Assembly (NCBI GenBank): GCA_002794465.1
Contig: MTSL01000023.1
Coordinates: 1 to 6,978 of the forward strand
DNA from: Paramicrosporidium saccamoebae KSL3
Taxonomy: Eukaryota > Fungi > Cryptomycota
Length of the DNA stretch: 6,978 bases
Direction of reading: 5' to 3'
The notes under the pieces were generated by a model that did no database searches, was not told where the DNA came from, and was given only the letters and a program-made list of their open reading frames with translations. A program made the position numbers and the translations under genes. Positions 1 through 6,978 of the stretch are shown here, piece after piece. Positions within the stretch are counted from its first letter, which is position 1. The number at the start of each line of letters is the position of its first letter.

Positions 1-1
1 C

Positions 2-205
2 GGCAGTGGCCAGGATGTTAACCCAGATTTTGAGAGGTTGGTGGACTGTCGAAAGGAAGTGGCCCGAGAACTAGCTGTGCCAGACGATTCAATAGAACTC
101 AGTATGGGCATGTCTCAAGATTATGTCCAAGCCATAAAACAGGGAACCACAAGTGTTCGAGTTGGCAGTGCCATTTTCGGGGACAGGGTCAGAATAAAGA
201 GTTGA
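2..205 (+). CDS. PLPBP: 3' end (5'-partial) of pyridoxal-phosphate homeostasis protein, PLPBP/PROSC/YggS family
   Basis: My translation of frame 2: [67 protein letters not shown], with TGA at 203-205. It contains the family C-terminal signature LSMGMSxD...A...G.T.VRVGS.IFG.R and the upstream NPDF motif of eukaryotic members. It is absent from the ORF track because the start lies outside the window. Confidence 0.95.
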
Positions 206-236
206 TAAAACACGAGTACAATTGTTGTTGTGTAAG

Positions 237-352
237 TCCACATGTCGCGTAGTGGGGATAATACCACGGACTTTGTCACTACTATTTATTTGGGAGGCAA
301 GGGAACTCGTTTATTATCAATTTGTAAGTCATTTTATAGCCTCCCGAGCTGC
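237..352. repeat. Copy 1 of an unidentified modular non-coding element (candidate ncRNA gene or structured element)
   Basis: Core 237-278 TCCACATGTCGCGTAGTGGGGATAATACCACGGACTTTGTCA matches 6877-6918 at 41/42. GGGAGG 292-297 matches 6922-6927, GAACTCG 303-309 matches GAACCCG 6929-6935, and TTTTATAGCCTCCCGAGCTGC 332-352 matches 6958-6978 at 19/21. The repeat is directly observed; its function is unknown. Confidence 0.9.
332..352 (-). promoter_or_regulatory. Putative TATA-containing promoter block GCAGCTCGGGAGGCTATAAAA (minus strand)
   Basis: TATAAAA at 338-332 on the minus strand, conserved in copy 2 (6964-6958), with an identical 22-nt non-conserved spacer to the next conserved block. The promoter function is an inference. 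Confidence 0.4.
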
Positions 353-532
353 ACAGTAATAATCCTCAAATGGTAAGATATAGATCTCATTGTCCTTCAT
401 CGATTGTTCTGATTTTCTCTTCTCCAAACTAGGGAACTATTTCCAAAAGACATGCTAATCAGTCTTCTACGTCACACACAGATTTGATAATCTATTACCA
501 TATATCAGGATCAGGTTAACAATAAAATAATT

Positions 533-541
533 ATCGGTTAA
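533..541 (+). promoter_or_regulatory. ATCGGTTAA motif just upstream of the CFD1 ATG (Myb-like YAACNG on the minus strand)
   Basis: An identical 9-mer lies at 1614-1622 upstream of the TPR ATG. Function is not demonstrated. Confidence 0.25.
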
Positions 542-550
542 GCTGCACGT

Positions 551-1372
551 ATGTCAGGACTGGAAAATGTCAAGAACATTATAGCAGTATTATCAGGAAA
601 GGGGGGAGTTGGCAAATCGTCTGTATCTGTGCAGCTAGCAGTGACTCTTGCCCTCCAGGGAAAAAAGGTATAGCAGCTACAGTGTCTGTAACTCTAGGTC
701 GGTATTCTTGACGTGGATTTGTGTGGCCCCAGCATCCCACGAATGCTCAATGTAGTGGATGAACGTATTAAACAAGGCGCATCCGGCTGGATCCCCGTTA
801 CCGTCATCCACGAAGCGTATTCTCTCTCGGTCATGTCTATCGCGTTCCTTCTCCCCAACCGCGATGACGCTGTTGTCTGGCGCGGCCCCAAGAAGAATTC
901 CATGATCAAACAGTTTCTTTTCTCTGTTGAGTGGGGCCACTTGGACTATCTGGTTATTGACACTCCCCCCGGAACCTCGGATGAACATCTTGCCATTGTT
1001 GAATATTTGGCGCCGTTGGGGCCACGAGCCGTGATGGTGAGCACCCCGCAATTGGTGGCATTGGCAGATGTTGAGAAGGAAATTAACTTTTGCCGACAAG
1101 TGGCGCTGCCCGTATTGGGACTGGTTGAGAACATGAGCGGATACCTTTGTCCACATTGCGAACATTGTACAAACGTCTTTTCCTCAGATGGTGGAAGGGG
1201 ACTCGCTGAACGATACCAACTAGATTTCCTGGGCCGAATCCCTATATTTCCAAAATTAACAAGACTGTTGGAATCTGAAGACTCTAATCTGCTTCGAGAC
1301 TATGCCTTACAGACGCCCGAGATGTATGCCAAATTCAGAGAAATAGTGCAGCAATTAAATCTTGTATTGTAA
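551..1372 (+). CDS. CFD1: Cytosolic Fe-S cluster assembly factor Cfd1/NUBP2 (Mrp/NBP35 P-loop NTPase); join(551..667,698..1372), 263 aa
   Basis: Exon 1 encodes [39 protein letters not shown] (deviant Walker A GKGGVGKS). Exon 2 starts [17 protein letters not shown] and includes [30 protein letters not shown] and [14 protein letters not shown] (bridging CPxC at 1148-1159). There is no N-terminal four-Cys ferredoxin-like extension, which argues for Cfd1/NUBP2 rather than Nbp35/NUBP1. The spliced length of 792 nt is in frame. Confidence 0.93.
668..697 (+). other. Spliceosomal intron of CFD1, 30 nt, phase 0
   Basis: GTATAG...CTGTAACTCTAG. Removal joins GKK to VGILDVD, the continuous family sequence. 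An in-frame TAG lies at 671-673. Confidence 0.93.
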
Positions 1373-1613
1373 GCATTAAGATATTGTGAGGTGGTGGCTG
1401 GGTATTTAATGTTTTATGTGAGCCAATGTAAAAGGAGGAATCAGAGGCGAGAGACAGGGCGGTTGGCATTCTACCCATATTTGAGCATCTTGTCCATTAC
1501 GCAACAACACTCAACTTTGATAAAGCTGGAATGATATTGCAAATTTTCATTCCCCATTGTATCGCGATACTAGACTTGGAGTCTTGCCTTTCAACCACAT
1601 TACATCAGTATAC

Positions 1614-1622
1614 ATCGGTTAA
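1614..1622 (+). promoter_or_regulatory. ATCGGTTAA motif upstream of the TPR ATG
   Basis: Identical to 533-541. The motifs end 10 and 30 nt before the respective ATGs. Confidence 0.25.
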
Positions 1623-1651
1623 AATTAAGAAATTAATTTGCCGTTTTGGAA

Positions 1652-4600
1652 ATGGCGGACGAGGCAGTTGGCCGACTTTGCCAAATTCTCTCGTTGACTG
1701 ATGTACCTCAATTACCAGAACAATTGCAACACGACGACTCATGGAGGACGTTTCTGCAATCAATGGCCGAGTCTATCAATGACCGAGTCCAACGCACTGA
1801 GGAATTGGAAAAGTTGTCTCAGGAGTCTCGTTTGAGACAAGTTAATCTGGGTATGGTTGACTGGATAGCTTATTGGTAGAGCAAATGCTGAAAAATTTGC
1901 AACGAAAGCGAACAGAGGAACAGACAGAGCTGAATCGCATCACAAGCGCCTTGGAAGAATCGTCGGCCCGCATCTCTGAGCTTGGTAATAAGGCTGGGTC
2001 TGTGACTAACCTCCTTAGAGGTGGAGGCTAATAAAGGTGTGGGCGACAAGTCACTAATCCAGGTGGATTTGGAAAAGTCGCAGAGTCAAATTGAGATGCT
2101 GCGAGCCCGATGCGAGCGTCTGGAAGCAGAAAAGGCTGATATGCTGAGACTGGTGGACAGGCGACAACTCGACATTGACAGCCTAAACCAACAAATAGAG
2201 GACGTCACCAGCCGCATGCGAACGGTCCGAGAGGAAGCATTAAAACATGATTCAGAAGTGTCAGAAATGCGATCCAAGGCGACGGCTGCTCAACGACAAC
2301 TGGAGCTTGTAAAGGAAGAGAGCGACAAGCATCGCCAACAAGCTGAATGGAACTCGCAGGAACTTGACCAGCACATACAAGAATTTAGCAACTACCGAAA
2401 GCAAAAATCAGCAGAATTAGCGTCTTTGCAAGTGCAGTTGGAGAGGACCCAGGAGACAAATCTCCAATTAGATGAGCAGAATCGAGTCCTTCGGACAGCA
2501 CTTGAGGAGAAGGATTCCAAGGTAGAAGAATTGCTTCGACGCACACGAGATGCAGAATCGGCTTTGGCTGAGCAAGAGTCCATGTTTGTCCAGGAGATGA
2601 ACGCCAGAAGTCGGCTTGCTGATCTGTACAAGGAGGGAATGGAGGAGACCACAGTGCGACTGGAGGAAACTGAAGCCCTTCTCCAAATTTCACAATCCAA
2701 TGGCACTGATGTGGACGAACGCATTAGGCAGGCTCTGCAGGACAAGGAAAGCGAAATTTCCCTGTTGCAATCCCAATTACACGAGAAGGATAAGGAGACT
2801 GCGCTTCTTCGAAAACACATGGATGAATTGGGGAGTGGACATGTGCGATCGCATTCTGGCGCTGACAAGACTTTGTCAGAGGTATACGCGGAATCTGCAA
2901 AGGCCAAGACGGAACTGCTCAAAGCGCATCAGGAAATTGAGCGTCTTAAGGGATGCATTCAGGACATTTGCCAGGACATTGAGGCTCGTGTGCCCGTGTT
3001 GCAGATGGAGAGACGAGAAAATGAGCGTCTCAAGGTGGATGTGTCAGCTCTCTCCCAACAGCTGCTGGAAGTCTCAAAGTCACGCGACGAGTTGGAGAGG
3101 AAACTTTGTCGAGTGGAGGAGGAGCTTCGGGGAGGAAGAAAGGAAAAGATTTTACTTGAGCAACAAGTCAAGGATCTTGGCAAACAGATACAGGCGCTTC
3201 TTGGACAGATGGAGGGAATTGTGCCCAACGATTCAGGAGTTTTGGATTCAGAGCAGGTCATTGATGAGCGGTTAGTAGTATTCCGGAATATTCAGGAGCT
3301 ACAAGTGAGAAATCAGGAGCTTGTGAGGGTGCTCCGTGAGCTTAGTCAGCAGCAAGAAACGGCCGAGATTGAGCGTCTCCGAAAGGTGGAGCAGGAGATG
3401 CGGGGAGCGCTGGATCAGAATGCAGCAGAGCTGGCAGAATTAAAGGAGACGCGACAAAGACAAAGTACTCTGATGGAGTCTCTAATCCGACAGCGAGACA
3501 TGTTGCGGGACATGCTGGGACAGCAGCGCAGCCCAGTTGAGGAAAGTGCACAGGACATGCATGCTGACGGAAAAGAAGTGTCAGAGATGAGGGCAGAGCT
3601 GGAAATGTTCCGGACGGAAAAGGCCGAGAGCGAAAAGTACTTGATGGAACAGTTGGAGCATTGTCGAAACGAAAAGGGAGAACTATCTGGACGGGTTGCA
3701 CAGTTGACGGCTCAATTAGAATTCAAGCAGGAACGATACACCCTGCTAAAGCAGAACTACGACATGGAACGGGTGGAGCTGGATGGACTACGCAAGAGCA
3801 ACAACACGGCCCTCTCCTCTATTATGCAGCATCAGAGTCAGGTGCAGCAACTGATGGGAGAGATGCTTGCAGCTAAAGATGCACAACAACGTTCAGCGAC
3901 TCAGCTTTCGTCCCTGCGGGTAGAACTCGACATGACCCGAACCAGTGAACGCCGTCTAACTGGCGAGCTTACTACTCTACAACAGGAAAAGGAACGCCTC
4001 TCGCAACTATTAAGTGGACTGCAGGCAATGTCAGTAGAACATGAGGGATCGGAAGTTGCCCTGAAGCATCGCCTGAATGAGCAGATTGAATTTTTGGAAC
4101 GCGAACTGCAATCAGCTCGTCACAAGGTGGTGGAGGAAGTGGAGGCACACAAACTCGCCGTGGCAATTTCTGATCGTGAATATCGGGATCTCGTCCGTCG
4201 CTATGACCAATTGGTAATTTTATAGTGCTCACTAATAGCTTAGATGGAGACACATAATCGCATTAAGGAGGAAACGAATCAGACCAAATCCGCCAATGCT
4301 GAGCTGACTAGAGAAGTGTCAGATCTCAGAGTTTTGCATCAAAAGAGCGAGGAACGTCTTGCTCAGTTTATGGTTCCCACTGGGGAGACGGATGCAGATT
4401 TGCCCCGAGAGCTAGCGGCTTTGCGGATGAAATTTGGAGCGGTGGAGGATGAGCTACGCTTGGAGCGGGAACATGTAAGTACCTACAAAATGTTGGCCAA
4501 GAATGCCGAAGACGGATTGAACGACCTGACCCGCACCTTTGATGAGTACAAGGCCGCCTCGGAGCGTCGCATTTCCGAGTTGACGGGGCAGGCAGATGTT

Positions 4601-6811
4601 CTCTCTGTCAGACTGGAGAATACCGAGGAGCGGTGTCGTCAGTTGGAGAGTAAGGCAACCAATTTGACGGCCACTTTTACTGCTGAAAAGAATCAACTTG
4701 TCCAACAGCTTGCAGAATTGAAAGAATATGAATCAATGGCCAAAAGCCACAGCAGTCTGCGCAAGGAAGATGTGGATAGACTGCAGTCCTTGGTGAGTGA
4801 GACCCAAAGCAAATATGAACAAGAAGTGGTGGCCCATGGACGTGATTTGGAAGCTCTGCAAACTCTGAAGGGAGAGATGGGGTCGTATCAGCAACAAATT
4901 TCAGAACTGTCCCAAAACCTCAATGCAGCACGTGATCAGCTTGGAATATATGAAAAGATGTTGCAGAGTGAGCGCGAACAATGGAACGCTGAACGCGTTG
5001 ATACGCAACGCCGCGTCAGCGAGTTGGAGGGACAGAACAGTATTTTGTTGGGTCAAATCGAGTCTATGGCGGGACGAGCCTCCCGTCGAACATCGGATAT
5101 TCCAACTGAGGGAGGCGATGCAACCGACCTGATGGAGGTGGTTCGTTATCTGCGGAGACAAAAGGACATTTTGCAGATTGAGCACGACTCCATGTCCATG
5201 GAGTATCGCAGAGTCAAGGCACAGGCTGAGCAATTGCAGAGGTCTTTGGATGAGACGCGATCAGTGTTAGCGGAAGAACGACAGGGGAGTCAATGGCAGG
5301 AGCAGATGGCCTCGGAATATCGTGCACTTTTAGAAAAGGTGTCGCAAATGAATATTCTTCGAGAATCAAATGTCACCCTTCGACAGGAGGCTGATTCATT
5401 GTCGATACAGGTCCGCTCTCTCCAAGCACAGCTTCAGAACGCCCATGATGCAGTGGTGCCAAAGGAGGAAGAGTGTCGCATTCTTAATGCCAAACTTGTG
5501 GCCTCGGGTGAGGAACTGCGGGTGGTGCGTGATGATCGTGACAATTGGAAACGTCGTTTTGATCAGCTTTTGACAAAGTACCGGGTTGATCCTGCCGAGA
5601 TGGAACAGCAGAATGCACAACTGACCGCTCAATTGGCGCAGATGACGACAGAGTTGGAAGAGCTGAAGGAGCAGCTTGAAGAGGCCACCGATGATTCGGA
5701 TAAAGTAAAACAATTAGAGGAACAATTGGTCGAGAGGAATGCTATCCACGAACAAGTCACTAATAAGCTAGCCCAACTGGACACTAAGCATCGTGGACTC
5801 CTTCAAACATCTCGACAAATCCAAAAGACCCGCGATGAGTTGGCAAAGCGTGTTGCTGAGCTAGAATCAGCCGCCGCTCCCACTGTTGACAATGAGCAGC
5901 TTGTTGCTCTACAAGCGGAGAAGGATCGCCTAGACGCCGAGTTGGCCGAAAAGACGACCAAGCTGGAAAAGTATGTAGAGGCGTTTAAGAAGCTAAACAA
6001 GGTAAAGGAGCAATACAAGGACTCTCAGACGCTGATTAAAAACCTCCAAGATCAGGTACAGAATTCAGAACAGAGGTTGGAGGAGGTCAAGAAAGAGGCC
6101 GAATTGCGCAATAATCTGTTAAATTCAAATTGGCAGGCCAAGATGCGCAAACTCACCGAGCAGCTTGGACAAGGGGAAACGAAGCAAATCACTCCAGAGA
6201 CGCAAGAAACACCCATGAAAAGGGCCAAAGTCGAAGCCATGGCAGTGGAGGATCTGGATGATTTCCTTGCCGAGACTAAGCAGGAAGAAGAGAAAATTGA
6301 TATGAATGATTCGGATGAAAGGAGAGAACAAGCAGGCGATCAAATGGGTGTACAGATAGATGGTCCAATGGGTGGTCAGGCTGATGAACAGTCAAGAGAA
6401 CAGCACTTCCGTGAACAGGCTCATGAGCAAGCAGGAGAACAGTTTAGGGAAGAAGAGCCTCACGAAGATGACCATGAGTCTGTTGATCCAACGGCGGGGC
6501 CTTTAGAGCTTGTTGCCGTGTCTGCAGACCCCATGCTTGGGTTCAGCGATATGGAGGACGAAATGATGGGCGGGATGACTGATGAGGACACTTCAAACCC
6601 TGTTGAAGAGGCCCCCATTGTCCCTACCGAGGAGCCCGTCAGAAAAAGAGTGATCGATTTATCAGAGATTGGAAAGCGCCCAGTTATGAGGCATGTCCCC
6701 CTTCCTGCCCGTGGAGGCCATCTTCAACGCGGCCGCGGTCAACCATCACTAAGAAGAGTTCGTCGAGGTGGTCCTAGTACAAGTGGAGGGACTAGTAATC
6801 CTTCCGAATAA
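1652..6811 (+). CDS. TPR: Nuclear pore basket nucleoporin TPR/Mlp1-like; join(1652..1850,1880..1984,2019..4213,4244..6811), 1688 aa
   Basis: Long heptad coiled coil with segments recognisable from TPR/Mlp1: VFRNIQELQVRNQELVRVLREL, TQSKYEQEVVAHGRDL, LMEVVRYLRRQKDIL, EKVSQMNILRESNVTLRQE and NWKRRFDQLL. An acidic disordered tail and an Arg/Gly-rich end follow. Three GT-AG introns join track ORFs 1646-1879, 2021-4225 and 4244-6811, plus an unlisted 105-nt exon 2, into one 5067-nt frame. Confidence 0.9.
1851..1879 (+). other. TPR intron 1, 29 nt, phase 1
   Basis: GTATGG...TATTGGTAG. Removal gives ...RQVNL-E-QMLKNLQ..., an open frame. The branch site is not obvious. Confidence 0.85.
1985..2018 (+). 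other. TPR intron 2, 34 nt, phase 1
   Basis: GTAATA...GACTAAC (2004-2010, branch point)...CTCCTTAG. Removal restores the frame into ORF 2021-4225. Confidence 0.92.
4214..4243 (+). other. TPR intron 3, 30 nt, phase 0
   Basis: GTAATT...CACTAAT (4230-4236, branch point)...CTTAG. It contains the in-frame TAG (4223-4225) that ends the track ORF. Removal joins YDQL to METHNR. Confidence 0.92.
6320..6478 (+). repeat. Degenerate 12-nt / 4-aa coding tandem repeat (xxEQ/xxxQ) in the TPR acidic tail
   Basis: Translation RREQ AGDQ MGVQ IDGP MGGQ ADEQ SREQ H FREQ AHEQ AGEQ FREE EPHE DDHE, with recurrent GAACAG/GAGCAA at about 12-nt spacing. Confidence 0.65.
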
Positions 6812-6876: not shown

Positions 6877-6978
6877 TCCACTTGTCGCGTAGTGGGGATA
6901 ATACCACGGACTTTGTCAAGCGGGAGGAGAACCCGCTCATTTTTAATCCAATAGCCCTTTTATAGTCTCCCGAGTTGC
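6877..6978. repeat. Copy 2 of the unidentified modular non-coding element (may extend past the window end)
   Basis: Core 6877-6918, GGGAGG 6922-6927, GAACCCG 6929-6935 and TTTTATAGTCTCCCGAGTTGC 6958-6978 occur in the same order and orientation as 237-352. Confidence 0.9.
6958..6978 (-). promoter_or_regulatory. Putative TATA-containing promoter block GCAACTCGGGAGACTATAAAA (minus strand)
   Basis: 19/21 identical to 332-352, with the same 22-nt spacer. The promoter function is an inference. Confidence 0.4.

Follow-up and report, generated by a model that had tools for sequence, protein, structure and literature searches.

Solo LTRs of gypsy-type retrotransposons, for example the yeast sigma and delta elements, are a few hundred base pairs long, have TGTNR ends with a short, imperfect inverted repeat, are flanked by a short target-site duplication of fixed length (4 bp in the family described here), lie as dispersed single copies between genes, have their TATA and poly(A) signals on the same strand, and fall into subfamilies distinguished by part of the LTR sequence. 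TGTNR is the pattern of gypsy LTR ends (Bao et al., PMC2836005); TGTNR termini and 4-bp duplications are found also in the Ginger1 and Ginger2 elements, the inverted repeats of which are 40-270 bp long and the targets of which are CCGG/CCGT or RTATAY (PMC2836005). In stringent-type SINE/LINE pairs, such as UnaL2/UnaSINE1, the members share a 3' terminus that contains a small hairpin, and they form a series truncated from the other end. The family of short repeats described here resembles each of these three groups in the features listed, its TATA and poly(A) signals and its truncation series being candidate ones, except that it differs from Ginger in repeat length and target sequence; it also resembles small RNAs of the Pol III/snRNA type in that it is multicopy, does not code for protein, contains a motif like an A box and might form a terminal helix.

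The repeats come from Paramicrosporidium saccamoebae, a parasite of amoebae with a 7.3-Mb genome. The assembly was made from short reads with Velvet (k=53). In the published description (Quandt et al. 2017, PMC5701793), genic sequence makes up 76% and repeats make up 0.53%, and transposons go unmentioned; the low repeat figure and the lack of transposons weigh against the interpretation of the present repeat as a mobile element. The window, that is, the whole stretch of DNA that was analyzed, is the complete contig MTSL01000023.1 of 6978 nt (NCBI GCA_002794465.1). Using as queries the proteins of a relative (L003, see below), we found, through their P. saccamoebae orthologs, the ends of two further contigs, MTSL01000126.1 (L004) and MTSL01000005.1 (L005), and the repeat survey covered 30.9 kb on the three contigs. 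Window positions 6947-6978 are identical to L004 11881-11912, and this exact contig overlap of 32 nt, which lies inside a copy of the repeat, indicates that MTSL01000023.1 and MTSL01000126.1 are adjacent in the genome. The L005 contig bears the N-terminal part of the YggS gene of the window and adjoins the left end of the window, with a gap of roughly 60 codons.

All four introns of the window (668-697, 1851-1879, 1985-2018 and 4214-4243) are tiny (29-34 nt), start with GTA and have branch sites resembling CTAAC/CTAAT, which the AG follows after a few bases. The deposited gene model of 286 aa (window 2-1372) joins the C-terminus of the YggS-like protein to exon 2 of Cfd1, omits the true exon 1 of Cfd1 (551-667) and calls as an intron a stretch of about 500 nt within which the first copy of the repeat lies; the correct Cfd1 protein consists of 263 aa and its gene contains a single 30-nt intron (668-697).

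A sequence-only reading of the window had described two intergenic regions that share several blocks and had proposed that these represent a novel small-RNA family. The block pattern itself is real: the 42-nt core matches at 41 of 42 positions between 237-278 and 6877-6918 (BLAST E 1e-17), GGGAGG, GAACYCG and the 21-nt block TTTTATAGYCTCCCGAGYTGC (19/21) follow downstream of the core in the same order in both copies, and the spacers between the blocks have the lengths that were claimed (13/3, 5/1 and 22/22 nt). A BLAST search of the window with word size 7 recovered both copies of the core and yielded no third copy. The extent of the repeat proved to be different. A three-way alignment of the two window copies (c1 and c2) with a third full copy on L004 (c3) defines a unit of 234 nt, of which c2 represents a shorter, 220-nt version, and both boundaries of c1 are set by the alignment with c2 and c3 (Table 1), so that c1 occupies window positions 243-476 rather than 237-352. 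The window ends (6978) within c2, the rest of which is on MTSL01000126.1; the flanks, taken to be unrelated, in fact continue to be homologous on the 3' side for another 124 nt, as can be seen through the adjoining contig. The 6 nt preceding the unit (237-242 and 6877-6882) were excluded from the element because TCCACW is not found in c3.

Table 1. Genes, repeat copies and parts of the repeat in the window and on the two neighboring contigs (L004, end of MTSL01000126.1; L005, end of MTSL01000005.1; positions without a contig label refer to the window; c, full copy; f, fragment)
Feature	Position	Strand	Remarks
YggS-like gene, C-terminus	2-205		
Cfd1/NUBP2 gene, spliced	551-667 + 698-1372		
Mlp/TPR-like coiled-coil protein, 1688 aa	1652-6811		three introns, 29-34 nt
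c1, complete 234-nt element	243-476	+ (strand starting TGTCGCG)	nhmmer E=1.9e-85; 93.6% identical to c3 over 234 nt
c1 target-site duplication, left, CACA	239-242		direct repeat of 477-480
c1 target-site duplication, right, CACA	477-480		
Left terminal inverted repeat, TGTCGCGTAG	243-252		TGTNR-type end
Right terminal inverted repeat, CTACGTCACA	467-476		reads TGTGACGTAG on the opposite strand, which matches the left end at 8/10 positions
M1 ("core"), element 1-36	243-278	+	identical in c1, c2 and c3
M2, element 37-96	279-338	+	c1 and c3 100% identical; c2 version about 55% similar, 14 nt shorter
M3, element 97-234	339-476	+	89-94% identity among c1, c2 and c3
Internal inverted repeat, 5' arm, UGGGAGGC	291-298	+	can pair with 339-346 (centroid structure)
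Internal inverted repeat, 3' arm, GCCUCCCG	339-346	+	GGGAGG/CCTCCC inverted repeat
TATAAAA, then AATAAA motifs further along the same strand	332-338	-	common to c1, c2 and c3
c2, first 96 nt of the 220-nt element	6883-6978	+	other 124 nt on MTSL01000126.1, L004 11880 down to 11757
c2 flank, TCCACT	6877-6882		resembles c1 flank TCCACA (237-242); absent from c3
c3, full copy	core at L004 5371-5405	-	
f4	L004 1419-1401		19/20; first 20-33 nt of the element
f5	L005 11541-11570		28/30; only the first 30 nt of the element
f6	L004 about 5442-5528		c2-type, about 70% identical; element ~1-99 (about 90 nt); separated from c3 by 48 nt

The unit starts with TGTCG and ends with CGTCACA, both ends fitting TGTNR...YNACA. 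Terminal inverted repeats had been reported as absent; at the true ends, TGTCGCGTAG and the reverse complement of the opposite end, TGTGACGTAG, form an imperfect inverted repeat of 10 bp (8/10). The absence of a poly(A) tail was noted correctly, and so was the lack of coding capacity: the start codon of a 44-aa open reading frame in c1 is missing in c2, and the other frames carry stops. A micro-exon of a coding gene was considered and rejected given that its 5' splice site would be GTCA, compared with GTA in the four real introns. Direct repeats of exactly 4 bp flank c1 (Table 1) and c3 (ATTG/ATTG); the 4-bp flanks of c2, CACT and CCAG, differ from each other. As measured on the same sequences, the empirical chance of a 4/4 flank match at a fixed spacing is 0.0038, and that of flank repeats in at least 2 of the 3 full copies is 4e-5.

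Searches with an nhmmer profile of c1-c3, mismatch scans and local alignment revealed three partial copies, bringing the family to six loci in 30.9 kb, of which half are full copies and half are decayed or truncated; these are spread over the three contigs, occur in both orientations and lie without exception in spacers that follow genes (a stop codon is located shortly upstream of c1 and of c2 in the window), and bear out the expectation of a dispersed multicopy family. No other dispersed repeat was detected in the 30.9 kb. The alignment score of f6 is 45, compared with 20±3 for shuffled sequences, and none of the fragments shows homology past the extent given in Table 1, that of f4 and f5 stopping at about 30 nt. 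The copies are of different age, to judge by their similarities (93.6% between c1 and c3, 28/30 for f5, 19/20 for f4 and about 70% for f6). That the family reflects an assembly artifact or a local segmental duplication, which might be suspected from the position of c2 at a contig end in a short-read Velvet k=53 assembly, has a virtually negligible probability and is rejected by these data: the copies differ from one another, have unique, gene-bearing flanks and lie on three contigs, and decayed versions are among them. The repeat gave rise to the contig end at c2, not vice versa, and the sequence-only reading was justified in disfavoring a simple recent duplication.

Comparison of the three full copies further shows that the element consists of three modules. 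M1, the 36-nt sequence TGTCGCGTAGTGGGGATAATACCACGGACTTTGTCA, is the sole module that remains in f4 and f5; M2 contains GGGAGG, GAACYCG and the "spacers" of the original description; and of M3, only the first 14 nt were covered by that description. The copies differ in M3 at 9-15 positions per pair, mostly by transitions (12:3 against other changes), and the proportion of variable columns is 0/36 in M1 versus 19/138 in M3 (P=0.005). Between c1 and c3, there are no differences in the 96 positions of M1 and M2 versus 15 in the 138 positions of M3 (Fisher p=5e-4). The module boundaries, 36/37 and 96/97, are supported independently by the comparison of c1 with c2, the comparison of c1 with c3, and the extent of f6. 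The blocks had been thought to be kept by selection among unrelated spacers. However, the 22-nt spacers are identical at 11 of 22 positions (by hand count) and so are diverged homologs, and c1 and c3 are identical across the very "spacers" that differ in c2; being perfectly kept in c3, these are not fast-evolving linkers between selected blocks. Rather, c2 comes from a subfamily with another M2 and shared end modules, which produces the appearance of conserved blocks and diverged spacers. The mosaic points to recombination or conversion among lineages of the element, not to selection at each locus, as the likely source of the pattern seen in the alignments. The greater conservation of M1 than of M3, together with the substitutions in GGGAGG/CCTCCC that keep pairing on the plus strand, could reflect some constraint beyond neutral decay, a point against the solo-LTR reading set out below.

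Taken together, the defined ends, the 4-bp duplications, the dispersed copies of differing age, the absence from relatives and the lack of an RNA signal (see below) make a mobile element the best reading, and we consider it highly probable, judging from these sequence features, that the repeat is a mobile element of some class. It is a new representative of a known kind of element and appears to be unannotated in the P. saccamoebae genome. With regard to the class, the TGTNR ends, the fixed 4-bp duplication and the short inverted repeat together argue for integrase-type insertion and, consequently, for gypsy-type solo LTRs; we give an even chance to the possibility that each copy is a solo LTR left by an LTR retrotransposon of the Ty3/gypsy type, the sense strand of which would be the minus strand of the window. 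Two hallmarks of LTRs are present, namely TG...CA/TGTNR ends with a short inverted repeat, and, in c1 and c3, a target-site duplication of fixed length within the 4-6 bp range, exactly 4 bp in this case. The modules, too, can be accommodated: the U3 region would extend from window position 476 to 339, with TATAAAA at its end; R, with AATAAA, from 338 to 279; and U5, which would correspond to M1, from 278 to 243. The module boundaries, the extent of f6 and the order of the motifs all fit such a U3-R-U5 layout on the minus strand. The TATAAAA and AATAAA motifs lie on one strand in an order that fits U3-R and might be the promoter and poly(A) signals of the proposed LTR, although on their own they are weak evidence; both motifs are fairly frequent by chance in AT-rich DNA, which counts against the solo-LTR reading. 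Under the solo-LTR scenario, an integrase-type enzyme would insert the element, creating the TGTNR...YNACA ends and the 4-bp target-site duplications; recombination between paired LTRs would then delete the internal part, leaving single LTRs; and these would reside in gene-poor spacers downstream of genes and decay through substitution and deletion.

Several observations set the family apart from typical solo LTRs. All copies in the 30.9 kb are solitary, and this region contains no parent, that is, no full-length element with paired LTRs, a primer-binding site (PBS), a polypurine tract (PPT) and gag-pol; neither a PPT nor a shared PBS adjoins any of the copies. The mismatched flanks of c2 likewise count against this reading. 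Furthermore, all three P. saccamoebae fragments retain the M1 end, the U5-side end of the proposed LTR, which random erosion of solo LTRs would not predict. There is no clear association with tRNA genes: a tRNA-Leu(CAA) gene (L004 11512-11596) is located 160 nt from c2, the other five loci have no tRNA gene nearby, and, with c2 alone in such a position, tRNA targeting is not indicated. The sequence TCCAC is common to c1 and c2 directly before the element, so that, on the minus strand, GTGGA follows two bases after ...ACA and resembles the first bases of a primer-binding site; the sequence is missing from c3. This shared flank may reflect a target-site preference or chance.

The retention of one terminus by all the fragments is what brings in the main rival of the solo LTR, a 5'-truncating non-LTR retroposon, either non-autonomous and similar to a SINE or derived from the 3' tail of a LINE, that would be propagated by target-primed reverse transcription of a minus-strand RNA. 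Reverse transcription would start at ...CCCCACUACGCGACA-3', and incomplete copying would yield 5'-truncated insertions; indeed, f4 (20-33 nt), f5 (30 nt) and f6 (about 90 nt) keep the same terminus with varied reach, this terminus bears a small hairpin (GUGG-N8-CCAC), and, in keeping with a tail recognized by reverse transcriptase, M1 is the most conserved module. Nevertheless, we regard a retroposon as unlikely. In all three full copies, the 5' boundary is sharp and the same, and the ends are TG...CA; both clear duplications are exactly 4 bp long, whereas variable length would be expected; no poly(A), A-rich or simple-repeat tail is present; and no duplications flank f4 or f6. The repeat also differs from SINE/LINE pairs in the lack of a recognized head: no tRNA-, 7SL- or 5S-derived sequence with Pol III A and B boxes was detected, with ARAGORN and the Rfam tRNA, 5S and SRP models all failing to register a match. 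The 5' end on the minus strand lacks a convincing pair of A and B boxes, judged by eye against the Pol III consensus, and the only A-box-like motif is on the strand on which the fragments would be 3'-truncated.

A further possibility is that the repeat is a MITE, which could have arisen, for instance, by internal deletion from a Ginger-type element with its gypsy-like integrase. The TGTNR ends, the presence of a terminal inverted repeat and the 4-bp length of the duplications are all as in Ginger (PMC2836005); yet the inverted repeat is imperfect and 10 bp long, the targets are CACA and ATTG, and the one-ended fragments always retain one and the same end, and this origin is very improbable.

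The proposal that had drawn attention to the window, a novel small-RNA family under selection, fares poorly, given that the unit is a 234-nt sequence with transposon-type ends, 4-bp target-site duplications and decayed copies. Restated for the complete unit, it would be a plus-strand family of structured non-coding RNA genes of about 230 nt, or of a shorter form based on M1, and we find it very unlikely. In favor of such genes, M1 is invariant in the three copies and M3 is variable (P=0.005, as above); M1 resembles the Pol III A box consensus, TRGCNNAGTGG, at 10 of 11 positions; the terminal inverted repeat could form a 9-bp helix that contains a G-U pair on the plus strand only; and 5 of the 7 substitutions within 291-298/339-346 preserve pairing on that strand (hand count). 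The terminal helix (243-252/467-476) and the GGGAGG/CCUCCC helix would then be structural elements of the RNA. A search with the Rfam 15 covariance models, however, found no match at either copy in the window (E<=10), in line with the statement of the sequence-only reading that no known RNA could be recognized, and none on L004 and L005 (E<=1) at the repeat, with the tRNA-Leu gene in L004 recovered as a positive control; there is likewise no tRNA or snRNA match. ARAGORN predicted no tRNA with default settings, and, when introns were allowed at thresholds of 80% and 70%, made only implausible calls with introns hundreds of bases long. The minimum folding energy of the full unit is not below that of shuffled sequences (z-scores of -0.13 for the plus strand and -0.86 for the minus strand), and the same holds for the intervals originally described. 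With RNAalifold, which has low power for three copies, none of the 62 predicted pairs is compensatory, several are broken, and the covariation term is +0.24. Target-site duplications, decayed and truncated copies, relatives that lack the element, flanks without a shared upstream promoter or T-run terminator, and a middle third that is freely replaceable (M2 of c2) all count against RNA genes. The same mobile-element hallmarks, along with the lack of a covariance-model match, a folding signal or covariation, distinguish the repeat from tRNA, 5S, U snRNAs, SRP, RNase P/MRP, Y and vault RNAs.

The substitutions within the internal helix deserve a separate comment. Of the 7 changes in c2 and c3, the 5 that retain pairing leave a G-U or U-A pair in a plus-strand RNA, and 4 of these 5 would be A-C mismatches if the minus strand were transcribed; all of these are C-to-T or G-to-A transitions and are confined to one arm, and three sequences provide little power. 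This pattern is the one remaining point in favor of an RNA, but we take it as unexplained rather than as support. Also rejected was a minus-strand small-RNA gene with a TATA element, suggested by the fixed 22-nt spacing: the spacing amounts to mere ungapped homology, conservation reaches 138 nt upstream of the TATA motif, and a terminator is absent. Comparisons with U1, U2, U4, U5, U6, U11, U12, U3, 5S and 7SL/Alu RNAs yielded short resemblances, none of which is backed by Rfam, and the outcome was the same for RNase P/MRP CR-I, vault, Y and spliced-leader RNAs and for hammerhead ribozymes; AAAGUCC, CUCGGGAGGCU and GUAGUGGG are examples of such leads, none of which held up.

The location of the copies raises the question whether M1 could have been spread by a mobile element and then retained by selection, the 30-36-nt core being co-opted as a cis-acting element of 3' UTRs or transcription ends. 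At 6 of the 6 loci, M1 has the same orientation as the gene that precedes it and follows the stop codon at a distance of roughly 12-134 nt; the fragments always keep M1, and the three intact copies contain it in invariant form. Given, however, that 4 of the 6 loci lie between convergent genes, where either orientation qualifies, only two loci are informative (p=0.25); M1 is mutated in f4, f5 and especially f6; and most genes in the 30.9 kb lack M1. Co-option in this form seems very improbable. A broader formulation, in which M1 would be a selected functional module on the sense strand closely downstream of genes, for example a 3'-end/terminator element or a source of small RNA, spread by a mobile element in a compact genome, or else the family would be a new, promoter-less kind of retroposon in Rozellomycota, is quite unlikely.

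The closest relative in the protein database is represented by L003 (Logan DRR438482), with 65% identity in Cfd1 and a syntenic gene array (PCI+, TPR-, YggS+, Cfd1+, ANKRD13-); it contains no element between YggS and Cfd1, nor between PCI and TPR. The element is missing from the orthologous spacers in both syntenic relatives, L003 and L006 (GCA_047514055.1). Searches with 20/21-mers of the core and with the 21-nt block gave no match in bacterial or archaeal genomes or in viral contigs; a single match to the core in a metagenome contig (L001) was dismissed as chance, lying inside an unrelated coding region.

In itself, the finding is ordinary biology of low general interest, but it is useful for the annotation of the P. 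saccamoebae genome. The presence of six copies in 30.9 kb, set against the published 0.53% repeats, suggests that the repeat content may be underestimated; the repeat coincides with the contig break between MTSL01000023.1 and MTSL01000126.1; and c1 lies inside the erroneous gene model in which YggS and Cfd1 are fused. Should the copies prove to be solo LTRs, they would be evidence that retrotransposons are or have been active in a reduced genome close to Microsporidia, and could be used as markers for strain typing and for tracing rearrangements.

Several additional features of these genomic regions were observed. Between TPR and ANKRD13, P. saccamoebae has the YggS-Cfd1 pair in the opposite orientation to that in L003 (window 1-6811 against L003 1002-10499), and copies of the repeat lie within and beside the inverted block, not demonstrably at the breakpoints. 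In L006, a perfect 55-nt direct repeat (5466-5520 and 5621-5675, 155 nt apart) is located downstream of a HORMA gene and is unrelated in sequence to the P. saccamoebae family. The octamer AGCTGCAC occurs in the window at 346-353, at the start of M3 in c1, and again at 541-548, 3 nt before the start codon of Cfd1; the recurrence is probably due to chance. Finally, AGGAAGAATAAA-CTT-AA is present in three direct copies at L005 11487-11668, with a spacing of 84 and 66 nt; Tandem Repeats Finder reported nothing for these 3'-end repeats, which a separate repeat search did detect. The first copy overlaps the stop codon of ANKRD13, and the end of f5 is the exact start of the second copy, indicating that the 3' end of ANKRD13 is duplicated around f5; these repeats may have arisen as a target duplication, in which case it would be very long and diverged, or by local tandem duplication.
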